IMG/VR virus record: IMGVR_UViG_3300042889_001503
Span: 208,438-272,437 of that record
DNA length: 64,000 bases
Direction: 5' to 3' (one strand)
The translations under genes were made by a program, and so were the position numbers. The notes beneath the pieces are model-generated. The model was not told the DNA's origin. It worked only from the letters and a program-made list of their open reading frames with translations, and did not search any database. This document shows positions 584 through 35,080 of this stretch, piece by piece (position 1 is the stretch's first letter; every line of letters begins with the position of its first letter).

Positions 584-2176
584 ATGAAATTATTAGAAAG
601 TATAAAACAAATTATTACTGAGGCTTCAAAGAAAAAAATCTTAATGGATAAGATTGGTTTTAATGAGGATAATGCTGACCTATTAGATAAATTGTGTGGT
701 CCGTTATCGGTTTGGATGGCAAAAAAAATGATGGAGTTCCAACAATATAGTAGTGGAAGGTTGGGTAATCAAGTAAAAACGGGTTCTGAATTAATAGACC
801 AAATGAATAACAATGGTGTTTTAAGAATGAAACAGAGTGGTATCCAATCTATTATGGATTGGGTTCGGGTTGGTTTAAACGGTAATTTGGGCGAATATAA
901 AGATTTACCTTTTGTTGACTTGGTTTTACAGTCAAAAGAATGGCACGATAATTTGGAAATTGGACAGGGTGATATTAATTATAAAGAACAAAACCCAACT
1001 ATATTAGATTTCACTGATGAAAATGGAAATGGGTTTTATTGGGCTGATTTGAATACAAAAAACTCATCAGAAGAATGTAATAGAATGGGACATTGTGGAA
1101 GAAGTTCTTATGGATATCTTTATTCATTAAGACAAGTAATTCCGATTAACAACAAATATAAATTAAACAAATCAGTTCTAACTGCGGCAATTGGTGAGGA
1201 TGGTATTATGTATCAGTTGAAGGGTGTTAAGAACTCAAAACCAAAAGATGAATACCATCAATACATTCAACCGTTATTCTATGTGTTAGGTGGTGAAGGT
1301 GAAGAAGATGATTATCTAATTCAAGGTTTTGGAACGGAGTACGCATCTGAACAGGATTTTAAATTGTCTGACTTACCGGAACAAACAATCAAAGAATTGT
1401 ATCAAAATAGACCGGAGTTGTTCTCGTCAAGACCTATGCAACGATTGTTAGATAAGATGGGTATTATTGAAATGGAACCATTACCAACAGGATTCTCATT
1501 AGAAATTAAACCTGAGGATTTTGATGATTATGTTGATGGATGTACCTATCGTACTTATACTAATAGAACAACCGGAAAACAAACAAGAACAAGTATTTTT
1601 GTTGAAATAATGGCTGGTGATGCTTGGGATTTGTGGAATCAAGACGGTTACGAAGATTTTGGTAGTTATTTCCAATATACAGTAGACAAACCAACCGAAG
1701 AAAGATTGTGGGATATTGTTAGAAAAATGGCAGAAAGAGATGGTGTTGAATTAGATGAGGATTTAGATTTAGAAGATTCTATCAAACAAGTGGATGATGA
1801 TTGGGAAATAAGAAATGCTATTGGTGGTGCGATAAATGATGCTGACGCAAATGATTATGTAGATTTTCTACAGAAAGAAATTGAGTCGGCGTTAGAGTTT
1901 TATGGTAATGTATATGAATTTAATGACACCGGAGCCAAAATTCAAGTCGATTTAGCTAATTTAGTTGATATTGATGAAGGTTGGGTTGATGAAATATTTG
2001 AAAATCATATGAATAGGGATGGTAAGTATGATTTAGAAGGAATATTTAATGAATTATTATCTGAAAGTCATATTGATAAACCTGACTTTGACCCCGATGA
2101 CAGATGGTATCCATCACCTGATGATAGTGTTGTAAATGAAAATGTTAATTATAGATTAGATGATATAAGTATATGA
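584..2176 (+). CDS. Hypothetical protein, leader-bearing, acidic C-terminal half
   Basis: 530 aa ORF; MKLLESIKQIITEAS leader; ECNRMGHCG motif; D/E-rich C-terminus. Confidence 0.8.
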   Translation: MKLLESIKQIITEASKKKILMDKIGFNEDNADLLDKLCGPLSVWMAKKMMEFQQYSSGRLGNQVKTGSELIDQMNNNGVLRMKQSGIQSIMDWVRVGLNGNLGEYKDLPFVDLVLQSKEWHDNLEIGQGDINYKEQNPTILDFTDENGNGFYWADLNTKNSSEECNRMGHCGRSSYGYLYSLRQVIPINNKYKLNKSVLTAAIGEDGIMYQLKGVKNSKPKDEYHQYIQPLFYVLGGEGEEDDYLIQGFGTEYASEQDFKLSDLPEQTIKELYQNRPELFSSRPMQRLLDKMGIIEMEPLPTGFSLEIKPEDFDDYVDGCTYRTYTNRTTGKQTRTSIFVEIMAGDAWDLWNQDGYEDFGSYFQYTVDKPTEERLWDIVRKMAERDGVELDEDLDLEDSIKQVDDDWEIRNAIGGAINDADANDYVDFLQKEIESALEFYGNVYEFNDTGAKIQVDLANLVDIDEGWVDEIFENHMNRDGKYDLEGIFNELLSESHIDKPDFDPDDRWYPSPDDSVVNENVNYRLDDISI

Positions 2177-2883
2177 GTTTAAGTAAGGATTTAACAATTG
2201 TAATCCCCTGTAAAAATGAGGGATTAATCATAAAGAAAACTTTAGGATTGTTAAACTTGCAAAATAATATTAAAGGTGTAAATGTAATGGTTGCCGATTC
2301 TTCAACGGACGATGGATTCACACAGAAATGTATTCTTGGTTCATACCATACCAACATCAATGTAAAAATAGTTAAAGGGGGATTTCCGGCTGAAGCCAGA
2401 AACAATGGTGTCAAAAAGATAAAAACTCCTTATGTTTTATTTTTGGATGCCGACATATTCATCAACCAATATTGTTTATTAAATTGTATGGTTGAAGTTA
2501 TGAAAGAAAATGATTATCATTTGTCAACAACTAAAATGAGAACTGACGATGGTGATTACAATTATGTGTACAAATCATTTGATGTTATCCAATACTTAAC
2601 CAAATTCTCCACACCCTTTGCGGTTGGAGGATTTATGTTATTTAATTTAGAGGAATTCAATTCATTGGGAGGATTTAATCCGGATGACAAGTTCGCTGAG
2701 GATTATCATTTAAGTTCAAAAATAAAACCAAATAAGTTTTATGTGGCAAACAAAATTGTTTATACCACATCAAGACGATTCAAGAACAAAGGTTTATTCT
2801 ATATGGTTAAGATGATGATTAAATCTTGGTTTAATAGAAATAATGATGAGTTCTTCACAAAGGAACATAATTACTGGACATAA
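2173..2883 (+). CDS. Glycosyltransferase family 2
   Basis: IVIPCKNE, VADSSTD, ARNNG, LFLDAD, GGF...FAED GT-A motifs. Confidence 0.9.
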   Translation: MSLSKDLTIVIPCKNEGLIIKKTLGLLNLQNNIKGVNVMVADSSTDDGFTQKCILGSYHTNINVKIVKGGFPAEARNNGVKKIKTPYVLFLDADIFINQYCLLNCMVEVMKENDYHLSTTKMRTDDGDYNYVYKSFDVIQYLTKFSTPFAVGGFMLFNLEEFNSLGGFNPDDKFAEDYHLSSKIKPNKFYVANKIVYTTSRRFKNKGLFYMVKMMIKSWFNRNNDEFFTKEHNYWT

Positions 2884-3602
2884 TGAAATACAAAACAATA
2901 ATTCTATCAGACATTCACTTGGGTTCCAAATCAAGTAGAGCCAACGATGTTATAGAATTTCTTGAAAACAACACCACAGAGACATTAATATTAAATGGGG
3001 ATATCGTTGATGGTTGGGCACTCAAAAGAGGTGGTAAATGGACCGAAAGTCATACCAAAGTATTGAGAAAGATAATGAAGATGAGTGAGAAAGGTGTGAA
3101 TGTTATTTGGCTTAGAGGAAATCACGATGAGTTCCTAAAAGATTTCATTCCATTTCATTTATCCAATCTAACAATCACGGAGGATTATACCTTCACATCC
3201 ATAGATGGTCGTAAGATGTATGTGTTTCACGGAGATGTATTGGATGTATTCATTACCAAAGCAAAATTTTTAGCTCACATCGGTTCAATAGGTTATGATA
3301 TAGCATTATGGATGAATAGAGTTTACAACAAATATCGTGAGATGAGAGGGTTACCTTATTATTCCATCTCCAAAGATATTAAAAGTGGGGTTAAGAAAGC
3401 CGTTAATTTCATAAATGATTTTGAACATAACGCAATACTATTGGCTTACAAAAAAGGATGTGATGTTGCCGTATGTGGACACATTCATCAACCGGAGTTA
3501 AAAGACAATTATATGAATAGCGGGGATTGGTGTGAAAACTGTACCTCATTAGTGGAAACAAAAAAAGGAACGTGGAAAATAATAGAGTTTCACAAAAAAT
3601 AA
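2883..3602 (+). CDS. UDP-2,3-diacylglucosamine hydrolase-like metallophosphoesterase (LpxH/YbbF-like)
   Basis: SDIHLG, LNGDIVD, RGNHD, FHGD, CGHIH, NSGDWCE motifs. Confidence 0.85.
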   Translation: MKYKTIILSDIHLGSKSSRANDVIEFLENNTTETLILNGDIVDGWALKRGGKWTESHTKVLRKIMKMSEKGVNVIWLRGNHDEFLKDFIPFHLSNLTITEDYTFTSIDGRKMYVFHGDVLDVFITKAKFLAHIGSIGYDIALWMNRVYNKYREMRGLPYYSISKDIKSGVKKAVNFINDFEHNAILLAYKKGCDVAVCGHIHQPELKDNYMNSGDWCENCTSLVETKKGTWKIIEFHKK

Positions 3603-3983: not shown

Positions 3984-4498
3984 TGGGTAAGTTATTACCT
4001 GTACCATATCCCGGTCAATCTATGGATGAATACCGGGAACAATTAGTTAACTTCCAAAAGAATTATTGGAGTTTCTTAAAACCATCCAAAGGTGGAAGTA
4101 AGTTCATCCCTTTACCACCATTAACATTAATCAAAAAAACAAAAGAAATGAGTTCAAAAAAATTAAGCGAACACGTCGAACAAGAATTATTCGACAAAGA
4201 AAAAAGAGTTATACCAAGTGTTTCACCTGAATACAGAGTGAAATTAAACGAAGGAGTTGACCCTAAAAAAGTTATTAAAACAACACCTGTAATCCGTAAA
4301 GAATCTGTATTGGGGTCAGTTGAGGATAAACCGGTTAAAAAGAAAAAACCATACTACAGAAAAAAATACAACAAACCAAAACCTGTTGAGGTTGTGATTC
4401 CGGAATCAACTAACCCAAACACTTTTGTTAGAGGATTTGTAATTGGGGTTATTGTTGGTATTATATTAACATCAATTATTGAAACAATTATAAATTAA
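3983..4498 (+). CDS. Hypothetical protein with basic region and C-terminal TM helix
   Basis: 171 aa; KKKKPYYRKK; FVIGVIVGIILTSII. Confidence 0.65.
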   Translation: MGKLLPVPYPGQSMDEYREQLVNFQKNYWSFLKPSKGGSKFIPLPPLTLIKKTKEMSSKKLSEHVEQELFDKEKRVIPSVSPEYRVKLNEGVDPKKVIKTTPVIRKESVLGSVEDKPVKKKKPYYRKKYNKPKPVEVVIPESTNPNTFVRGFVIGVIVGIILTSIIETIIN

Positions 4499-4513
4499 AA
4501 AACTATTATTTGT

Positions 4514-4633
4514 ATGTGGTTCTATATTTTAATTGTAATATTTGTTGGTTTAGGTGTTGGGTCTTGGTTGTATATAATGTTTGAGTTATTTAGAAATATT
4601 GTTAGACGATTAAAAGAAAAAAAAGATGTTTAA
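4514..4633 (+). CDS. Small membrane protein
   Basis: Manual ORF of 39 aa MWFYILIVIFVGLGVGSWLY. Confidence 0.45.
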   Translation: MWFYILIVIFVGLGVGSWLYIMFELFRNIVRRLKEKKDV

Positions 4634-4943
4634 AGAGGGTGATAAGTATATCCACTTTACCAAGTATGGTGGGATAAATAAAGGTGTTGTTAGTGAATTT
4701 TTTAATACACATTGTATTGATACTAAAAACTGTGTTGCGTATGAAGTTCCCCACGTTAGAAATGAGAATGGAATTGTATTAAATCTTAGAGAAGATGGAC
4801 TTATTTATAAGATAACGCACGAATATTCGGAAGAAGAGTGTGAAAATATAAGAAAAGTTGGGAAATATTATCAAAATAGGAAACAAAACAAAATAGATGA
4901 ATATTTATCCGATGAAGATGTATTAATCTTCCCTAATCTATAA
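4626..4943 (+). CDS. Hypothetical protein
   Basis: 105 aa ORF in co-oriented block. Confidence 0.7.
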   Translation: MFKEGDKYIHFTKYGGINKGVVSEFFNTHCIDTKNCVAYEVPHVRNENGIVLNLREDGLIYKITHEYSEEECENIRKVGKYYQNRKQNKIDEYLSDEDVLIFPNL

Positions 4944-4958
4944 GTAATTCCAACAAAA

Positions 4959-5117
4959 ATGAAATTCATTGCACCTGTCGCAATTCTAGTGATTTTAGTG
5001 TCGCTAGCTCTTTATTTAGTAAAGAAAAAACCTAAACAAATTGTTTCAGAGGAAGTGGTTATTGAACCACCGGTGAAGAAGAAAAGAGTGTATAAAAAGA
5101 AAACAAAGAAGGTATAA
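4959..5117 (+). CDS. Small membrane-anchored basic protein
   Basis: Manual ORF of 52 aa MKFIAPVAILVILVSLALYL...KKKRVYKKKTKKV. Confidence 0.55.
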   Translation: MKFIAPVAILVILVSLALYLVKKKPKQIVSEEVVIEPPVKKKRVYKKKTKKV

Positions 5118-5195
5118 TGGTAACACCTGACCCTTCCGCACCACTACCGTTATTAATCGGTGTGATTTGTTTGTTTGTGATAATAGTGTTGAGAG

Positions 5196-5369
5196 ATGAG
5201 TTTAAAAAAGATAAAGATAAGAGTTAAATTATTATTTGTGTTCCTTGGATGGTGTGTATCAGATATCCGAGAGAACTACGGTGATATGAAATCTCGTTAT
5301 GTTTTGGAAACCGACCCTGAATTATTTGAACTTCAAGAATTTGTTAAAGAACTAATTAAGAAAAAATGA
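5196..5369 (+). CDS. Small hypothetical protein
   Basis: Manual ORF of 57 aa MSLKKIKIRVKLL. Confidence 0.45.
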   Translation: MSLKKIKIRVKLLFVFLGWCVSDIRENYGDMKSRYVLETDPELFELQEFVKELIKKK

Positions 5370-5480
5370 ATGATTGTGTAACTTTTTTGATGTCTGTTAC
5401 GTATAATAACTGACAATAAAGTTGATGAGATAATAAATAAAAAAAACTTTAAAAAAGTTTGGTAGTATTAAAAAAAGTGT

Positions 5481-5488
5481 TATCTTTG
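5481..5488 (+). promoter_or_regulatory. Bacteroidota-type sigmaA promoter -7 box
   Basis: TATCTTTG with upstream TTTG/TTGG near -33. Confidence 0.7.
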
Positions 5489-5494
5489 TCAAAC

Positions 5495-5673
5495 AAATAA
5501 GGAATAAAAGATTATGTCGAAAAAGAGGGGCGGAAACCCAAATACGTCGAAAGATGGTGACAAGGAATGTTAGGCAATCCTAAAACCTAACTGCTAAGAA
5601 TCAAGTGTTATGATTCGGGTTAACAACCTCAACTTATGGTGAAACAAAAAAAGGTTCCTTCGGGAACCTTTTT
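5495..5673 (+). ncRNA. Putative structured non-coding RNA of unknown family
   Basis: Own promoter and terminator; hairpins GGG-CGGAAA-CCC, CGTC-GAAA-GATG (5545-5556), GTTAGG/CCTAAC, GAATCA/TGATTC, GGTT/AACC; only a 19-aa ORF. Confidence 0.5.
5646..5673. terminator. Bidirectional intrinsic terminator with UUCG tetraloop
   Basis: AAAAAAAGGTTCC-TTCG-GGAACCTTTTT between convergent units. Confidence 0.85.
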
Positions 5674-6157
5674 AATTGGGCATATTTCTTGTAAACACAT
5701 CACCATATCTATCAACAATAATTGTTGGGGATTCGTTAACTCTAAATTTAAGATGGTTAGGGTGTTGAATTGATGTATTTATAATTATTTTAATCCTATT
5801 ATGTGTTCCATTTAACCACATATGATAATCAATACCCGCTACATTGTCGATAACATTAATTGAACATCTAACAACACATTCTTGCATTATTCTTCTTGCT
5901 GATTGTATTATTGTTGATTCTATATCCATTATAGAATCGTTAATTTCATCTGGGTCAACTCTTTGAAATGAACTACTAGAACCGACAGACTCCTGAGAAT
6001 GGGGGTTTTTATACAAGTTAATTAAACTATTTTCACTTCTATGTAATCTTCTAATAAAATCTTGTTCACCTAAGATATTATTTACAACAATTTCATATAT
6101 TAAAATTGGTTTTGGTTCTGTATATTCCCTTAATATCTGTCTAATTAATTCCTTCAT
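5672..6157 (-). CDS. Hypothetical protein, leader-bearing
   Basis: Probable start MKELIRQILREY just after TATTTAT on minus strand (6162-6168); track start 6196. Confidence 0.7.
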   Translation of the reverse strand: MKELIRQILREYTEPKPILIYEIVVNNILGEQDFIRRLHRSENSLINLYKNPHSQESVGSSSSFQRVDPDEINDSIMDIESTIIQSARRIMQECVVRCSINVIDNVAGIDYHMWLNGTHNRIKIIINTSIQHPNHLKFRVNESPTIIVDRYGDVFTRNMPN

Positions 6158-6261
6158 AGTAATAAATATATATTTTTTCAATAAATGCTTGTGCAATTAA
6201 AGTAAATGTGTTACTTTTGTCCTATCAAACTGAAACAATAACCTTAACACATACAGAAACT

Positions 6262-6375
6262 ATGAAAACAATTACCTTCACAATGCAAGAGATATGGGCG
6301 GCTTCTCGTCCATCTGTTCAAAAAAGTAAAAAAGCTTACAACAGAAAACCAAAACACAATAAAGATAAGTACTAA
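6262..6375 (+). CDS. Small basic protein, ArfA-like C-terminus
   Basis: Manual ORF of 37 aa MKTITFTMQEIWAASRPSVQKSKKAYNRKPKHNKDKY; own TACTTTTG promoter (6212-6219) and terminator. Confidence 0.6.
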   Translation: MKTITFTMQEIWAASRPSVQKSKKAYNRKPKHNKDKY

Positions 6376-6379
6376 TATC

Positions 6380-6404
6380 AAACCCATCTCCGGATGGGTT
6401 TTTT
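6380..6404 (+). terminator. Intrinsic terminator
   Basis: AAACCCATC-TCCG-GATGGGTTT plus T-run. Confidence 0.8.
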
Positions 6405-33646: not shown

Positions 33647-35080
33647 TCAAATTTGTTTTCCATATTCAATAACGGTTTCAGTTTTTTCTTCTTGACGGTG
33701 ACCGCCAACATAAGTTCCACATACTTTATTACCATTATCAATCACGTCCTCAATTTGAGTCTCCCATCTAATATATAGAAGACTTGTTGATGGGTCGGTA
33801 TAATTTCCTGACATAGTTTTTTTTACACCGTTTTTAATCACACCATTAATTCTTCCTTTGTGGTGATATACATCTTCATAGGTTTCTTTAACACCTTCAC
33901 TAATAACGTCCTTTATTAAATCTGTTGGGACATCCCAATCACATTCAATGGTGTCCGTAATACCTTTGTTAATAATCTTATCAATTATGTTTTCACCAAC
34001 ATATTGACGTGGGGTGGAACTTCTCACACCATCTCTAACGACAAGATGTGATTCTAAAATAAGTTCTCTACCGCTAGTATCTAAAATCAGAAGAGCATTC
34101 TTTTTTTGTTTTGTTTCTTTTACACCATTTTTAAGTGCGTCTTCCATTTTATTATCAAAAAATTTCATCACATCAACGTGACTAGTTTCTTTAACACCAA
34201 TATCAATCACTTTATAAGCATCAACCCTAAGTTTTGACATATGATATTTAGTTTCCTTCACACCCTTATCAATTACTTCTTCACATAAAAATTGGAATTT
34301 ATCTCCCGATTTGGTTTCTTTCACACCTTCTTTAATGACACCATTAATCCAACTTTGATTTTCGTACTCACTATATTGAGTGTCTCTCACACCATTTTGA
34401 ATAACATCTTTAACGTCACCTCTAAATCCTTTATACTCGTAAATTTCTTTCACCCCATTTTGAATGATGTCGTTAATATCTCCAAGTTTTTTATCTGAAC
34501 TTCCGTTATCGGTATCTTTAACAAGGAATGGTCGATGGAAATGGAGGGGGTCAGTTTTCTTCACACCATTTTCAAGAGTACCCTCAACTGATAAGGTTCT
34601 TTTATCGCCCCAATAATCGGTGTTCTTCACCCCATTTTGAATGATATCGTCAACCCCAAGAAGAGTACGTCGTAATGTGCTATTAGTTTCTTTCACCCCA
34701 TTCTCAATGGTATCGTCAACGGACCAACACGTTTTCATATGAGCCATCTTAGTTTTATTTACACCATTTTCAAGAGTATCTTCAAATTGTTGTTTTCTAT
34801 CCCGGGCATCTCTAAAGAGTGTAACATAAGTTAACTCTTTATTTATAATATTGTCTTCCACCCATTTTGTGATGAGGTGTTGATTCTGAACGCAATCCAA
34901 CGAAGCGTAAGCAAAAACACTTTTAAAAAAGTTGTAATTATACCACAGAGTTTTATTCTCAGTTAATTCAATCACCCATTGTTTAGTCTCAGTAAAGATT
35001 AACCAAGTGGAATCATTGTGGGTGTAGGTATCCACACCTTCGGTAAATTCGTTGATTAGTTTATGTATAATTTTTTCCAT
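33647..35080 (-). CDS. Tandem-repeat protein, about 15-16 repeats of roughly 22 aa
   Basis: Recurring D(I/V)IxNGVK(E/K)T scaffold with variable linkers; N-terminal WF-like domain; TATCTTTG on minus strand at 35085-35092. Confidence 0.85.
   Translation of the reverse strand: MEKIIHKLINEFTEGVDTYTHNDSTWLIFTETKQWVIELTENKTLWYNYNFFKSVFAYASLDCVQNQHLITKWVEDNIINKELTYVTLFRDARDRKQQFEDTLENGVNKTKMAHMKTCWSVDDTIENGVKETNSTLRRTLLGVDDIIQNGVKNTDYWGDKRTLSVEGTLENGVKKTDPLHFHRPFLVKDTDNGSSDKKLGDINDIIQNGVKEIYEYKGFRGDVKDVIQNGVRDTQYSEYENQSWINGVIKEGVKETKSGDKFQFLCEEVIDKGVKETKYHMSKLRVDAYKVIDIGVKETSHVDVMKFFDNKMEDALKNGVKETKQKKNALLILDTSGRELILESHLVVRDGVRSSTPRQYVGENIIDKIINKGITDTIECDWDVPTDLIKDVISEGVKETYEDVYHHKGRINGVIKNGVKKTMSGNYTDPSTSLLYIRWETQIEDVIDNGNKVCGTYVGGHRQEEKTETVIEYGKQI

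Follow-up and report, generated by a model that had tools for sequence, protein, structure and literature searches.

A pseudoknotted phage RNA gene convergent with a gene for a predicted RegB/RelE-like ribonuclease

We analyzed a 64,000-nt stretch (hereafter the window; positions 208,438–272,437 of IMG/VR record IMGVR_UViG_3300042889_001503) of the genome of an uncultured Bacteroidota jumbo phage and found that it encodes a structured, pseudoknotted non-coding RNA of about 180 nt (predicted transcript 5494–5673, + strand). In almost every relative found, this RNA gene was located tail-to-tail with an unannotated gene for a probable RegB/RelE-like endoribonuclease, and the two were exchanged together as one cassette. 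This suggests a new kind of RNA–protein partnership, possibly an RNA brake on a phage ribonuclease; the latter is inferred, and direct evidence for it is lacking. The RNA gene had been flagged from the sequence alone, and this observation was confirmed. Its original interpretation was partly supported.

Sequence features of the RNA gene

The promoter was of the consensus Bacteroidota type: the –7 element TATCTTTG (TAnnTTTG consensus) was found at 5481–5488 (+) and the –33 element TTTG at 5458–5461 (+), exactly 19 nt upstream. The full TTTG-N17-22-TAnnTTTG pattern occurred 11 times in the window against 5.0 expected. The same arrangement stands upstream of the RNA in relatives, and the promoter with the leader (5438–5514) was 80% identical to intergenic promoters upstream of CDSs in Flavobacterium phages tant8-1 and FPSV-S2. 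The transcript start (5494) was inferred from promoter geometry, while the end corresponds to the U-tract of an intrinsic terminator (5648–5673). This terminator (A5-GGUUCC-UUCG-GGAACC-U5; stem-loop and U5 at 5653–5673) is bidirectional and is shared with the convergent gene, the stop codon of which (5672–5674) overlaps the U-tract. Between positions 3500 and 8000, 8 terminator-like sites were found against 2.0 expected. G+C content of region 5512–5645 was 40.3% against 32.2% for the window. The single-sequence fold was only modestly better than shuffles (z = –2.3); the case for structure therefore rests on comparative evidence.

All the hairpins named in the original prediction were present. 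Closing helix P1 is formed by 5512–5518 (UUAUGUC) and 5559–5565 (GACAAGG); its inner 4 bp are firm, whereas the outer part competes with pseudoknot stem 1 in this subtype. It is followed by the junction GAAAAA (5519–5524), conserved as (G/U)AA(A/G)A in 19 relatives, and by the variable hairpin P2 (5527–5539, GGG-GCGGAAA-CCC, with GGG at 5527–5529 and CCC at 5537–5539), which is long in other subtypes and absent or replaced in subtype C. The most conserved part of the family is the core UAC-[P3]-GU-G (5543–5559), in which P3 is CGUC-GAAA-GAUG (5545–5556). An H-type pseudoknot occupies 5563–5591: stem S1 pairs AGGA (5563–5566) with UCCU (5578–5581), and stem S2 pairs GUUAGG (5569–5574) with CCUAAC (5586–5591). 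The alternative pairing of GTTAGG with either CCTAAA or CCTAAC, originally read as switch-like, is thus not a switch but one stem of the pseudoknot, and the intervening UCCU is the 3′ strand of the other stem. Downstream are hairpin P5 (5598–5616, GAAUCA-AGUGUUA-UGAUUC, with strands at 5598–5603 and 5611–5616) and a small hairpin specific to this subtype (5618–5628, GGUU-AAC-AACC, with strands at 5618–5621 and 5625–5628), for which the only substitution in L011, a close relative of the window locus (loci are numbered with L), falls in the loop. The only open reading frame, of 19 aa (5514–5573, +; MSKKRGGNPNTSKDGDKEC), was judged not to be a gene; its ATG is part of the P1 5′ strand.

A covariance-model search against Rfam, proposed beforehand as a check on the RNA, gave no family. 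No Rfam 15 family (including c-di-GMP-I, hammerhead, twister, pistol, tmRNA, 6S, and the abiF motif) reached the gathering threshold in the whole window; at E up to 10 on the slice 5300–5800, only terminator-driven noise appeared, and nothing relevant was found on 8 relatives. ARAGORN detected no tRNA or tmRNA.

Conserved structure of the RNA family

Relatives from viral and metagenome contigs define a new RNA family with P1, variable P2, a near-invariant UAC-[P3]-GGU(G/A) core, an H-type pseudoknot, and P5. The core was found by exact-pattern scans. A scan of genome contigs with the 19-nt core gave about the chance number of hits (75 against roughly 70 expected), and only locus L199, a MAG contig, was a true member. 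Scans with relaxed P3 stem or loop patterns mostly returned chance hits, only L375 (GUAA loop) being new, while a search with a 10-sequence alignment added one locus. MAFFT alone misaligned the pseudoknot of the window subtype; the window was therefore parsed separately with a descriptor script and showed the same helices (P1 6/7, P3 4/4, S1 4/4, and S2 6/6 positions paired; P1 is 7 of 7 in most relatives). A model built without the window hit 5506–5559 at 24.3 bits (E 0.0066), as a local match only; a weak second hit at 34808–34941 (16 bits, E 0.39) was treated as noise.

Absence of covariation, or conservation of the 19-aa peptide rather than of base pairs, had been named in advance as grounds for rejecting the RNA; neither was observed. 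Nineteen parsed relatives share P1, P3, and the pseudoknot topology with different sequences. Our own count gave 96% canonical pairs and compensatory changes in 18 of 20 pairs, and 0 of 2000 shuffles were as good. A tool-based count was made on an alignment of 16 other members, which did not include the divergent window subtype: 97% of cells paired, 15 of 20 pairs changed on both sides, and the covariation score was 0.524 against 0.223 (0 of 500 shuffles), slid controls reaching at most 0.10. The covariance-model alignment was fitted to P1, P3, and S2, which favors those helices, while S1 was not part of the model. In this alignment, 6 of 7 pairs of P1 and 5 of 5 pairs of S2 changed on both sides; S2 was paired in 100% of cells and S1 in 93%. 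P3 covaries in distant members (GGU/ACC in locus L456 and ACU/GGU in locus L454). The strand is fixed by many G-U pairs and the GNRA loop. All substitutions in L011 fall in loops or are wobble or compensatory, including a G:C to A:U change in P5 (5598/5616); a hairpin at this place in the other subtypes was read by eye and not counted. Between the window and loci L009 and L011, the RNA was 94% and 92% identical, while the partner ORF was 82% and 80% identical. The ATG of the 19-aa ORF was absent from sister loci at the same genomic position (L012, L065, and L456).

The convergent partner gene and cassette exchange

Contrary to the original prediction, the RNA gene is not stand-alone. In every locus with enough flank except L199, which has no partner gene nearby, the RNA converges on a gene of 160–220 aa of an unannotated family; in the window, it is the gene 5672–6157 (–), encoding a protein of 161 aa. 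The partner ORF abuts the terminator, although in locus L031 a 102-aa ORF separates the two genes. The partners are homologous in all subtypes. An HMM of the family hit only RNA-bearing loci among about 460 loci and matched the window gene at E 7e-15. The family comprises 100 cluster representatives (about 100 clusters among 1.8 billion representatives). Pfam (E up to 1), PHROGs, PADLOC, and PDB-sequence searches of the partner protein found no family, and Pfam RegB_T4 was not hit. Megablast of the first 20 kb of the window and tblastn of two family proteins against cultured phages gave no match; all members come from uncultured phages.

The AF2 model of the window protein was poor (pLDDT 64) and was not used for the fold search; instead, the relative P0001 (pLDDT 87.5) was used. 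Its best match among 48,161 chains was T4 endoribonuclease RegB (Z 5.3, 119 residues aligned), followed by RelE, YoeB, YafQ, ParE, HigB, and CdiA-CT, many RelE-class toxins scoring Z 3–4.3. The match is weak in absolute terms, since a Z of about 8 is the tool's stated comfort zone. Foldseek against the PDB gave only weak rows (ParE, HigB, RelE, and CdiA-CT toxins), with RegB not among the top ones, whereas BFVD returned RegB-type hits, including a "Site-specific RNA endonuclease". The only hhalign stretch with T4 RegB (E = 0.12) placed the invariant His of the family (H53 of the window protein) and the Arg four residues after it on RegB H48 and R52; H48 is catalytic in RegB (PMC3014915). As regards the RegB/RelE-like (BECR) fold, two helices packed on a 3–4-stranded antiparallel sheet with a catalytic His/Arg/Glu cluster, these observations leave the assignment undecided; spatial clustering of the conserved residues was not examined. 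Sequence membership in RegB_T4 was not supported.

Sister phages with nearly identical flanks carry very different RNA–protein pairs, or neither. One conserved flank (6107–6270, –) comprises the upstream region and the first ~51 nt of the partner ORF and is nearly identical in phages whose cassette body is very different (window versus L012, L065, and L009); the other is the promoter and leader of the RNA. The window and L012 share flanks (93% aa identity of the flanking ORF o6208; near-identical first 51 nt of the partner ORF), but their RNA bodies and protein bodies differ (27% aa identity). Locus L016 lacks both the RNA and the protein. The most divergent protein branch (P0079/P0124) is accompanied by an RNA which keeps the topology but lacks the UAC...GGU core.

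Interpretation

We propose, tentatively, that the RNA binds its cognate protein directly and restrains or times its RNase activity as an antitoxin-like pseudo-substrate. In this view, strong early transcription would supply excess RNA, and the RNase would be released when the RNA decays or is titrated. The RNA family with its structure, the linkage to the gene, and the joint cassette exchange were demonstrated by our analysis, whereas the RNase identity is inferred with moderate support, and binding and inhibition are inferred without direct evidence: no experimental or transcript data exist, binding and neutralization were not assayed, and the complex was not modeled. RNA antitoxin was one of the four original guesses and is the closest to this explanation; the host-type promoter, the intrinsic terminator, and the non-coding nature of the gene were also supported. 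Precedents are the pseudoknotted RNAs of type III toxin–antitoxin systems and the non-repeat RNA antitoxin of AbiF-RCd22. However, the architecture differs from every known RNA-antitoxin system, the RNA being single-copy, without repeats, and convergent rather than upstream.

It is possible, although less likely than not, that this is the first RNA partner of a RegB/RelE-fold (BECR) ribonuclease, a single-copy "anti-RegB" RNA acting as a decaying timer or brake on phage-directed mRNA destruction, with RNA and enzyme co-diversifying as an exchangeable cassette under an arms race between phages or between phage and host. All known neutralizing partners of this class are proteins, so an RNA partner would be a new solution and a new architecture in RNA–protein toxin–antitoxin biology; it would also answer the question, explicitly left open for T4 (PMC3014915), of whether RegB-type enzymes have an "anti-RegB" partner, which two small synthetic genes make directly testable. 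Irrespective of this, the RNA family is absent from Rfam and so far seen only in uncultured Bacteroidota phages. The swapping of cognate pairs between nearly identical flanks marks the locus as a conflict or accessory hot spot in jumbo phages and offers natural specificity variants for dissecting RNA–protein recognition.

Tight linkage, co-variation, and joint exchange would equally be expected if the RNA were a positive partner of the protein (cofactor, scaffold, specificity subunit, or guide), resembling the way T4 RegB, nearly inactive without a helper (PMC1702504), needs ribosomal protein S1; the variable P2 and 5′ parts could carry specificity. We consider this unlikely because no complementarity to any target was found, no RNA-guided or RNA-activated RelE/RegB-fold enzyme is known to us, and the strong promoter, which should give an RNA excess, fits a buffer better than a stoichiometric subunit. 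Control of the convergent gene through nucleic-acid effects alone (transcriptional interference, read-through antisense, or kissing of the shared palindromic terminator), as in the par (Fst RNA I/RNA II) type I system, is still less likely. It agrees with the conserved convergent layout, with the bidirectional terminator overlapping the stop codon, and with the perfect consensus of the RNA promoter, no comparable consensus being seen by eye upstream of the partner gene. However, duplex energy between the RNA and the partner mRNA start region was no better than shuffles in 10 loci (|z| < 1.7), the two genes are separated in L031, and interference alone does not explain a conserved, covarying junction-plus-pseudoknot fold.

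An independent trans-acting RNA, such as an sRNA or a decoy for a host RNA-binding protein or defense system, is similarly doubtful: the orphan copy in L199 and the near-invariant core, which could bind a conserved host factor, speak for it, but adjacency and orientation are kept across protein relatives down to about 15% identity and in different phage backbones, and the RNA core changes in the most divergent protein branch. The riboswitch-like or ribozyme readings are very unlikely. The multi-helix junction with a GNRA loop and a pseudoknot, and a loose resemblance to GGCAAACC...GAAA...GGGAC of c-di-GMP-I (GEMM-I) noted in the original prediction, are all that favors them; the c-di-GMP echo is not supported, since no Rfam family was found and the GEMM-like letters lie in variable P2 and are not conserved in relatives, and no gene lies downstream on the same strand, the terminator being followed by a convergent gene. 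Least likely is a small-protein gene. The leader upstream of the ATG resembles leaders of coding genes in other Flavobacterium phages, the 19-aa ORF shows 3 silent changes and 1 replacement within the window subtype, and many members have an AUG in the conserved core (GAUGGUG). Nevertheless, the 19-aa ORF is absent from the other subtypes at the same locus, ORFs from the core AUG vary from 8 to 30 aa with unrelated sequences and are missing in L456, and the substitutions preserve base pairs, not residues.

Comparison with known systems

In type III toxin–antitoxin systems (ToxIN, CptIN, TenpIN), a protein endoribonuclease is tied to a cognate pseudoknotted RNA in subtype-specific pairs associated with phage–host conflict, as the presumed RNase is here, but the antitoxins are tandem repeats, lie upstream of the toxin on the same strand, separated by a terminator, and are processed by the toxin. 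Here, the only tandem repeat in 5300–6300 was a 2-copy A-rich 10-mer in the promoter, the arrangement was convergent, the protein had no match to the ToxN/AbiQ, CptN, or TenpN families and a RegB/RelE-like predicted fold, and the carriers are jumbo phages. AbiF-RCd22 of a C. difficile prophage is also a phage-borne, non-repeat structured RNA, which neutralizes an adjacent RNase-type toxin by direct binding; however, it lies upstream of and in cis with an Abi_2/HEPN-type protein, the RNA and protein families are different, and the abiF motif is in Rfam. In the par (Fst RNA I/RNA II) type I system, convergent transcripts share a bidirectional terminator, but the toxin is a small hydrophobic peptide controlled by antisense pairing at the start region, whereas our partner has 161–220 aa and no such complementarity was found.

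T4 RegB is an early phage gene, and both proteins would be phage RNases of the RelE/YoeB structural class; however, significant sequence similarity was absent, and a second catalytic His was not identified in the family. T4 RegB has no known RNA partner and targets GGAG Shine–Dalgarno sites with S1; Bacteroidota mRNAs largely lack such sites. RelBE, YefM-YoeB, and ParDE type II systems share the predicted fold class of the presumed toxin and the idea of a dedicated neutralizing partner, but their antitoxins are proteins encoded in the same operon, while at our loci no such conserved neighboring protein gene was seen, and the conserved neighbor is an RNA.

Sequence features of the RNA gene

We verified that every feature listed in the original prediction is present in the sequence; thus, the observation holds. 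The TATCTTTG element (5481–5488) is the −7 box of a Bacteroidota-type promoter, with its −33 TTTG located at 5458–5461 and a spacer of 19 nt. The full promoter pattern occurs 11 times in the window, while 5.0 occurrences are expected. About 180 nt follow, with a G+C content of 40% for positions 5512–5645 against 32% for the window. The unit ends in GGUUCC-UUCG-GGAACC-U5 (5653–5673), which the terminator scan also reported as a terminator on the minus strand. The only ORF of note was the 19-aa one at 5514–5573. Folding of the single sequence was only modestly better than that of shuffled sequences (z = −2.3) and therefore does not settle anything by itself. The interpretation given in the original prediction, a stand-alone structured RNA gene with switch-like pairing and an echo of c-di-GMP-I, is supported only in part, as described below.

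Origin and probable host

Over this region, the window is identical to three IMG/VR contigs of 50–272 kb, and its relatives are contigs of up to 318 kb; the source is therefore an uncultured jumbo phage. Three lines of evidence point to a Bacteroidota host, probably freshwater Flavobacteriales: the promoter type, an 80% match of the promoter and leader to intergenic promoters of Flavobacterium phages tant8-1 and FPSV-S2, and the presence of one family member (locus L199, 2575–2760) on a contig of a Crocinitomicaceae MAG (JBILHL010000038). The latter is an orphan copy of the RNA, close to the type found in locus L089, with no partner protein within the 8-kb locus; it is either a clue to the host or a phage contig binned with its host. 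No cultured phage matched in our searches.

The stretch similar to the Flavobacterium phages comprises positions 5438–5514 of the window (TTTG-N19-TATCTTTG-TCAAACAAATAAGGAATAAAAGATT) and corresponds to intergenic promoter–leader stretches (L001, 1501–1576; L002, 1501–1569) that directly precede protein-coding genes in these two unrelated siphophages. The cassette occurs only once in this 64-kb window. It may copy a strong host promoter and leader. Two copies of AAAAAACTTT (5441–5460) are located just upstream of, and overlapping, the −33 box; they are conserved in the close relative L009 and partly in another relative, L011, and may represent an UP-like or regulatory element.

A new structured RNA family

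A comparison with Rfam, proposed in advance as a check of the RNA's identity, gave no hit at the gathering score of Rfam 15 in the whole window. At E-values of up to 10 on a 500-nt slice, only terminator-driven noise was detected, and nothing relevant was found in eight relatives. No tRNA or tmRNA was found with ARAGORN. The resemblance to c-di-GMP-I suggested in the original prediction falls in the P2 hairpin, which is the least conserved part of the family.

Close relatives were found through the neighboring gene (L009 and L011, with 97% and 91% nucleotide identity, respectively). In L011, every substitution is located in a loop or linker, or is a G-U to A-U change, or is compensatory; in particular, the P5 pair 5598/5616 changes from G:C to A:U. 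A sister phage, L012, carries the same promoter and leader at the same place; after that, its sequence is quite different and shares only AAAUAC-AUUGAAAGAU-GGUG. Exact-pattern scans of viral contigs, metagenomes, and genomes with this core retrieved further members among many chance hits, and more were retrieved by examining the regions next to relatives of the partner protein.

Nineteen distinct sequences could be parsed into one architecture: helix P1 of 7 bp; a (G/U)AA(A/G)A junction; a variable hairpin P2; UAC followed by P3 (4 bp, mostly with a GAAA loop) and GGU(G/A); the 3′ strand of P1; an H-type pseudoknot with stems S1 of 3–4 bp and S2 of 4–6 bp; usually CGUAA; hairpin P5; and a terminator. 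The stems keep their places while their letters change. Stem S2 is CUUGG/CCAAG, GCUUA/UAAGC, CCAGU/ACUGG, CUAGU/ACUAG, CCGGU/ACCGG or, in the window, GUUAGG/CCUAAC. P3 is AUC/GAU in most members, GGU/ACC in locus L456, and ACU/GGU in locus L454.

Covariation among homologues, the absence of which had been set beforehand as grounds for rejecting the RNA, was assessed with two counts, and both support the structure. Our own count gave 96% canonical pairs and 18 of 20 pairs with compensatory changes, with 0 of 2000 column shuffles as good. The second count was made on a 16-sequence model-based alignment (A10): 97% of positions were paired, 15 of 20 pairs were changed on both sides, and the covariation score was 0.524 against 0.223 for shuffles (0 of 500). 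The alignment was fitted to P1, P3, and S2, whereas S1 was not in the model and still pairs in 93% of cells; it should also be considered that the sequences are related within subtypes. The window subtype is the most divergent: it was hit only locally by a model built without it (24.3 bits, E-value 0.0066) and was parsed by script rather than by the model. A weak full-length hit of the RNA model at 34808–34941 of the window (16.2 bits, E-value 0.39) lacks the conserved core and is probably noise. In all slid registers of the 16-sequence alignment, pairing collapsed to 24–52%, with a score of at most 0.10. Many G-U pairs and the GNRA loop fix the strand as plus in the window.

The GTTAGG segment, previously regarded as switch-like and able to pair with either of two partners, received another explanation. 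GUUAGG (5569–5574) pairs with CCUAAC (5586–5591) as S2, while the nearer UCCU (5578–5581) pairs back to AGGA (5563–5566) as S1; this is a pseudoknot, not two alternative hairpins. Conservation of the 19-aa peptide instead of the base pairs would have spoken against an RNA gene, but it was not observed: the ATG of this ORF is part of the P1 5′ strand and is missing in the other subtypes at the same genomic position. Short ORFs starting at the AUG inside GAUGGUG differ in length (8–30 aa) and sequence and are absent in L456.

Linkage to a convergent protein-coding gene

In contrast to the proposed stand-alone character of the gene, in every locus with enough flank except L199 the RNA converges on an ORF of 160–220 aa. 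In all but locus L031, the stop of this ORF abuts or overlaps the terminator of the RNA. In the window, the partner gene is encoded at 5672–6157 on the minus strand. In L031, one 102-aa ORF (1949–2257) is inserted between the partner gene and the RNA.

The partner proteins are homologous despite only 14–27% identity across subtypes. They share an invariant N-terminal M(R/K)xLI(R/K)xIL motif, one invariant His, and motifs such as EG(I/V)D and TQIKG. A profile search found 100 cluster representatives among 1.8 billion, nearly all of 190–220 aa; those checked are annotated as “hypothetical protein” or are unnamed. A family HMM run on the six-frame translation of all loci collected (about 460 loci and 3.3 Mb, mostly unrelated DNA) hit only RNA-bearing loci.

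Exchange of the RNA–protein cassette

Related jumbo phages share the genes surrounding the cassette. Upstream genes of the window (2173–3602) encode a family 2 glycosyltransferase and a calcineurin-like metallophosphoesterase; the latter is 94–97% identical across the related jumbo phages and is a useful marker for this phage group. The window and L009 have the RNA and the protein between ORFs o5196 and o6208. L012 has the same order, but with an RNA and protein of another subtype, and in the related phage L065 the pair is located after ORF o6528. Neither the RNA, nor the protein, nor o6208 is present in the sister jumbo phage L016, which carries there instead a 526-aa ORF of unknown function (4202–5782), near where the cassette sits in L065, between the homologues of o6528 and o6952. 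The small plus-strand ORF at window 6208–6401 (55 aa from GTG 6208), with its own terminator at 6380–6401, is divergent from the partner gene and stays 79–96% identical in sister phages even where the cassette is replaced. It is missing together with the cassette in L016 and was not found next to the module in other phage backbones.

Between the window and L012, the sequence is near-identical up to the end of the RNA's leader on one side and through the first ~51 nt of the protein ORF on the other; in between, it is unalignable except for the RNA core. Thus, RNA and protein are exchanged together. The RNA is also more conserved than its partner: between the window and L009 and L011, respectively, the RNA has 94% and 92% nucleotide identity against 82% and 80% for the partner. 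Next to the most divergent protein branch (P0079/P0124), beside a family B DNA polymerase gene, a longer (about 260 nt) divergent form of the RNA was found (L460, 3190–3450, and L447, 790–990, both on the minus strand). It keeps P1, a hairpin, the pseudoknot, and P5, but the UAC-P3-GGU core is replaced, which is consistent with co-evolution of the two partners.

Predicted fold of the partner protein

Searches of Pfam, PHROGs, PADLOC, and PDB sequences with the partner protein gave nothing. The AF2 model of the window's own, shorter protein was poor (pLDDT 64), whereas that of the relative P0001 was good (pLDDT 87.5, pTM 0.82). When aligned against 48,161 PDB representatives, the best match of the P0001 model was phage T4 endoribonuclease RegB (2hx6, Z 5.3, 119 residues, model residues 41–183). 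It was followed by a CdiA-CT RNase (Z 4.7) and a long run of RelE, YoeB, YafQ, HigB, and ParE toxins at Z 3–4.3 over residues 78–183. Foldseek weakly listed ParE, HigB, RelE, and CdiA-CT toxins, while RegB was not among its top rows. A search of BFVD returned uncharacterized jumbo-phage proteins and a “Site-specific RNA endonuclease”.

An endoribonuclease of the RegB/RelE fold is somewhat more likely than not, although a Z value below 8 can reflect a common arrangement only. The alignment with T4 RegB by hhalign was not significant (E-value 0.12). Its single aligned stretch places the invariant His of the family, and the Arg four residues later, on RegB H48 and R52. H48 is one of two catalytic histidines of RegB, and RegB is structurally a relative of RelE/YoeB (PMC3014915).

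Possible function of the module

Our data demonstrate that a structured RNA and a probable RNase gene are linked, with L199 as the one exception, are convergent, share a terminator, and diversify as a unit. Binding of the RNA to its cognate protein, however, is an inference. In this view, the near-invariant junction core is the natural candidate for the site that meets the conserved catalytic cleft, while the variable pseudoknot, P2, and P5 would give subtype specificity. We favor an inhibitory, antitoxin-like role: the RNA has a perfect consensus promoter, RNA antitoxins of RNases are pseudoknots (type III systems), a non-repeat example exists (AbiF-RCd22), RelE-class enzymes normally come with a neutralizer, and exactly this possibility was raised for RegB in a review on T4. 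A decaying RNA brake would make a simple timer for the shut-off of early messages, which is the role of RegB in T4.

Alternatively, the RNA may be an activating cofactor or specificity subunit, or an independent decoy that is merely linked to the gene. None of these possibilities is excluded in the absence of experiments; the same is true for control through convergent transcription or terminator kissing, although no RNA–mRNA complementarity was found at the start region of the partner. In the proposed role, the module would work most like a type III toxin–antitoxin pair, but it lacks three defining features of that class: tandem repeats, the same-strand upstream position of the RNA, and a ToxN/CptN/TenpN toxin. 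The RNA is in no Rfam family, and the protein resembles RegB and RelE in predicted fold only. What is already known is thus the pairing of an RNA with an RNase, whereas both the RNA family and the protein family are new to the databases searched.
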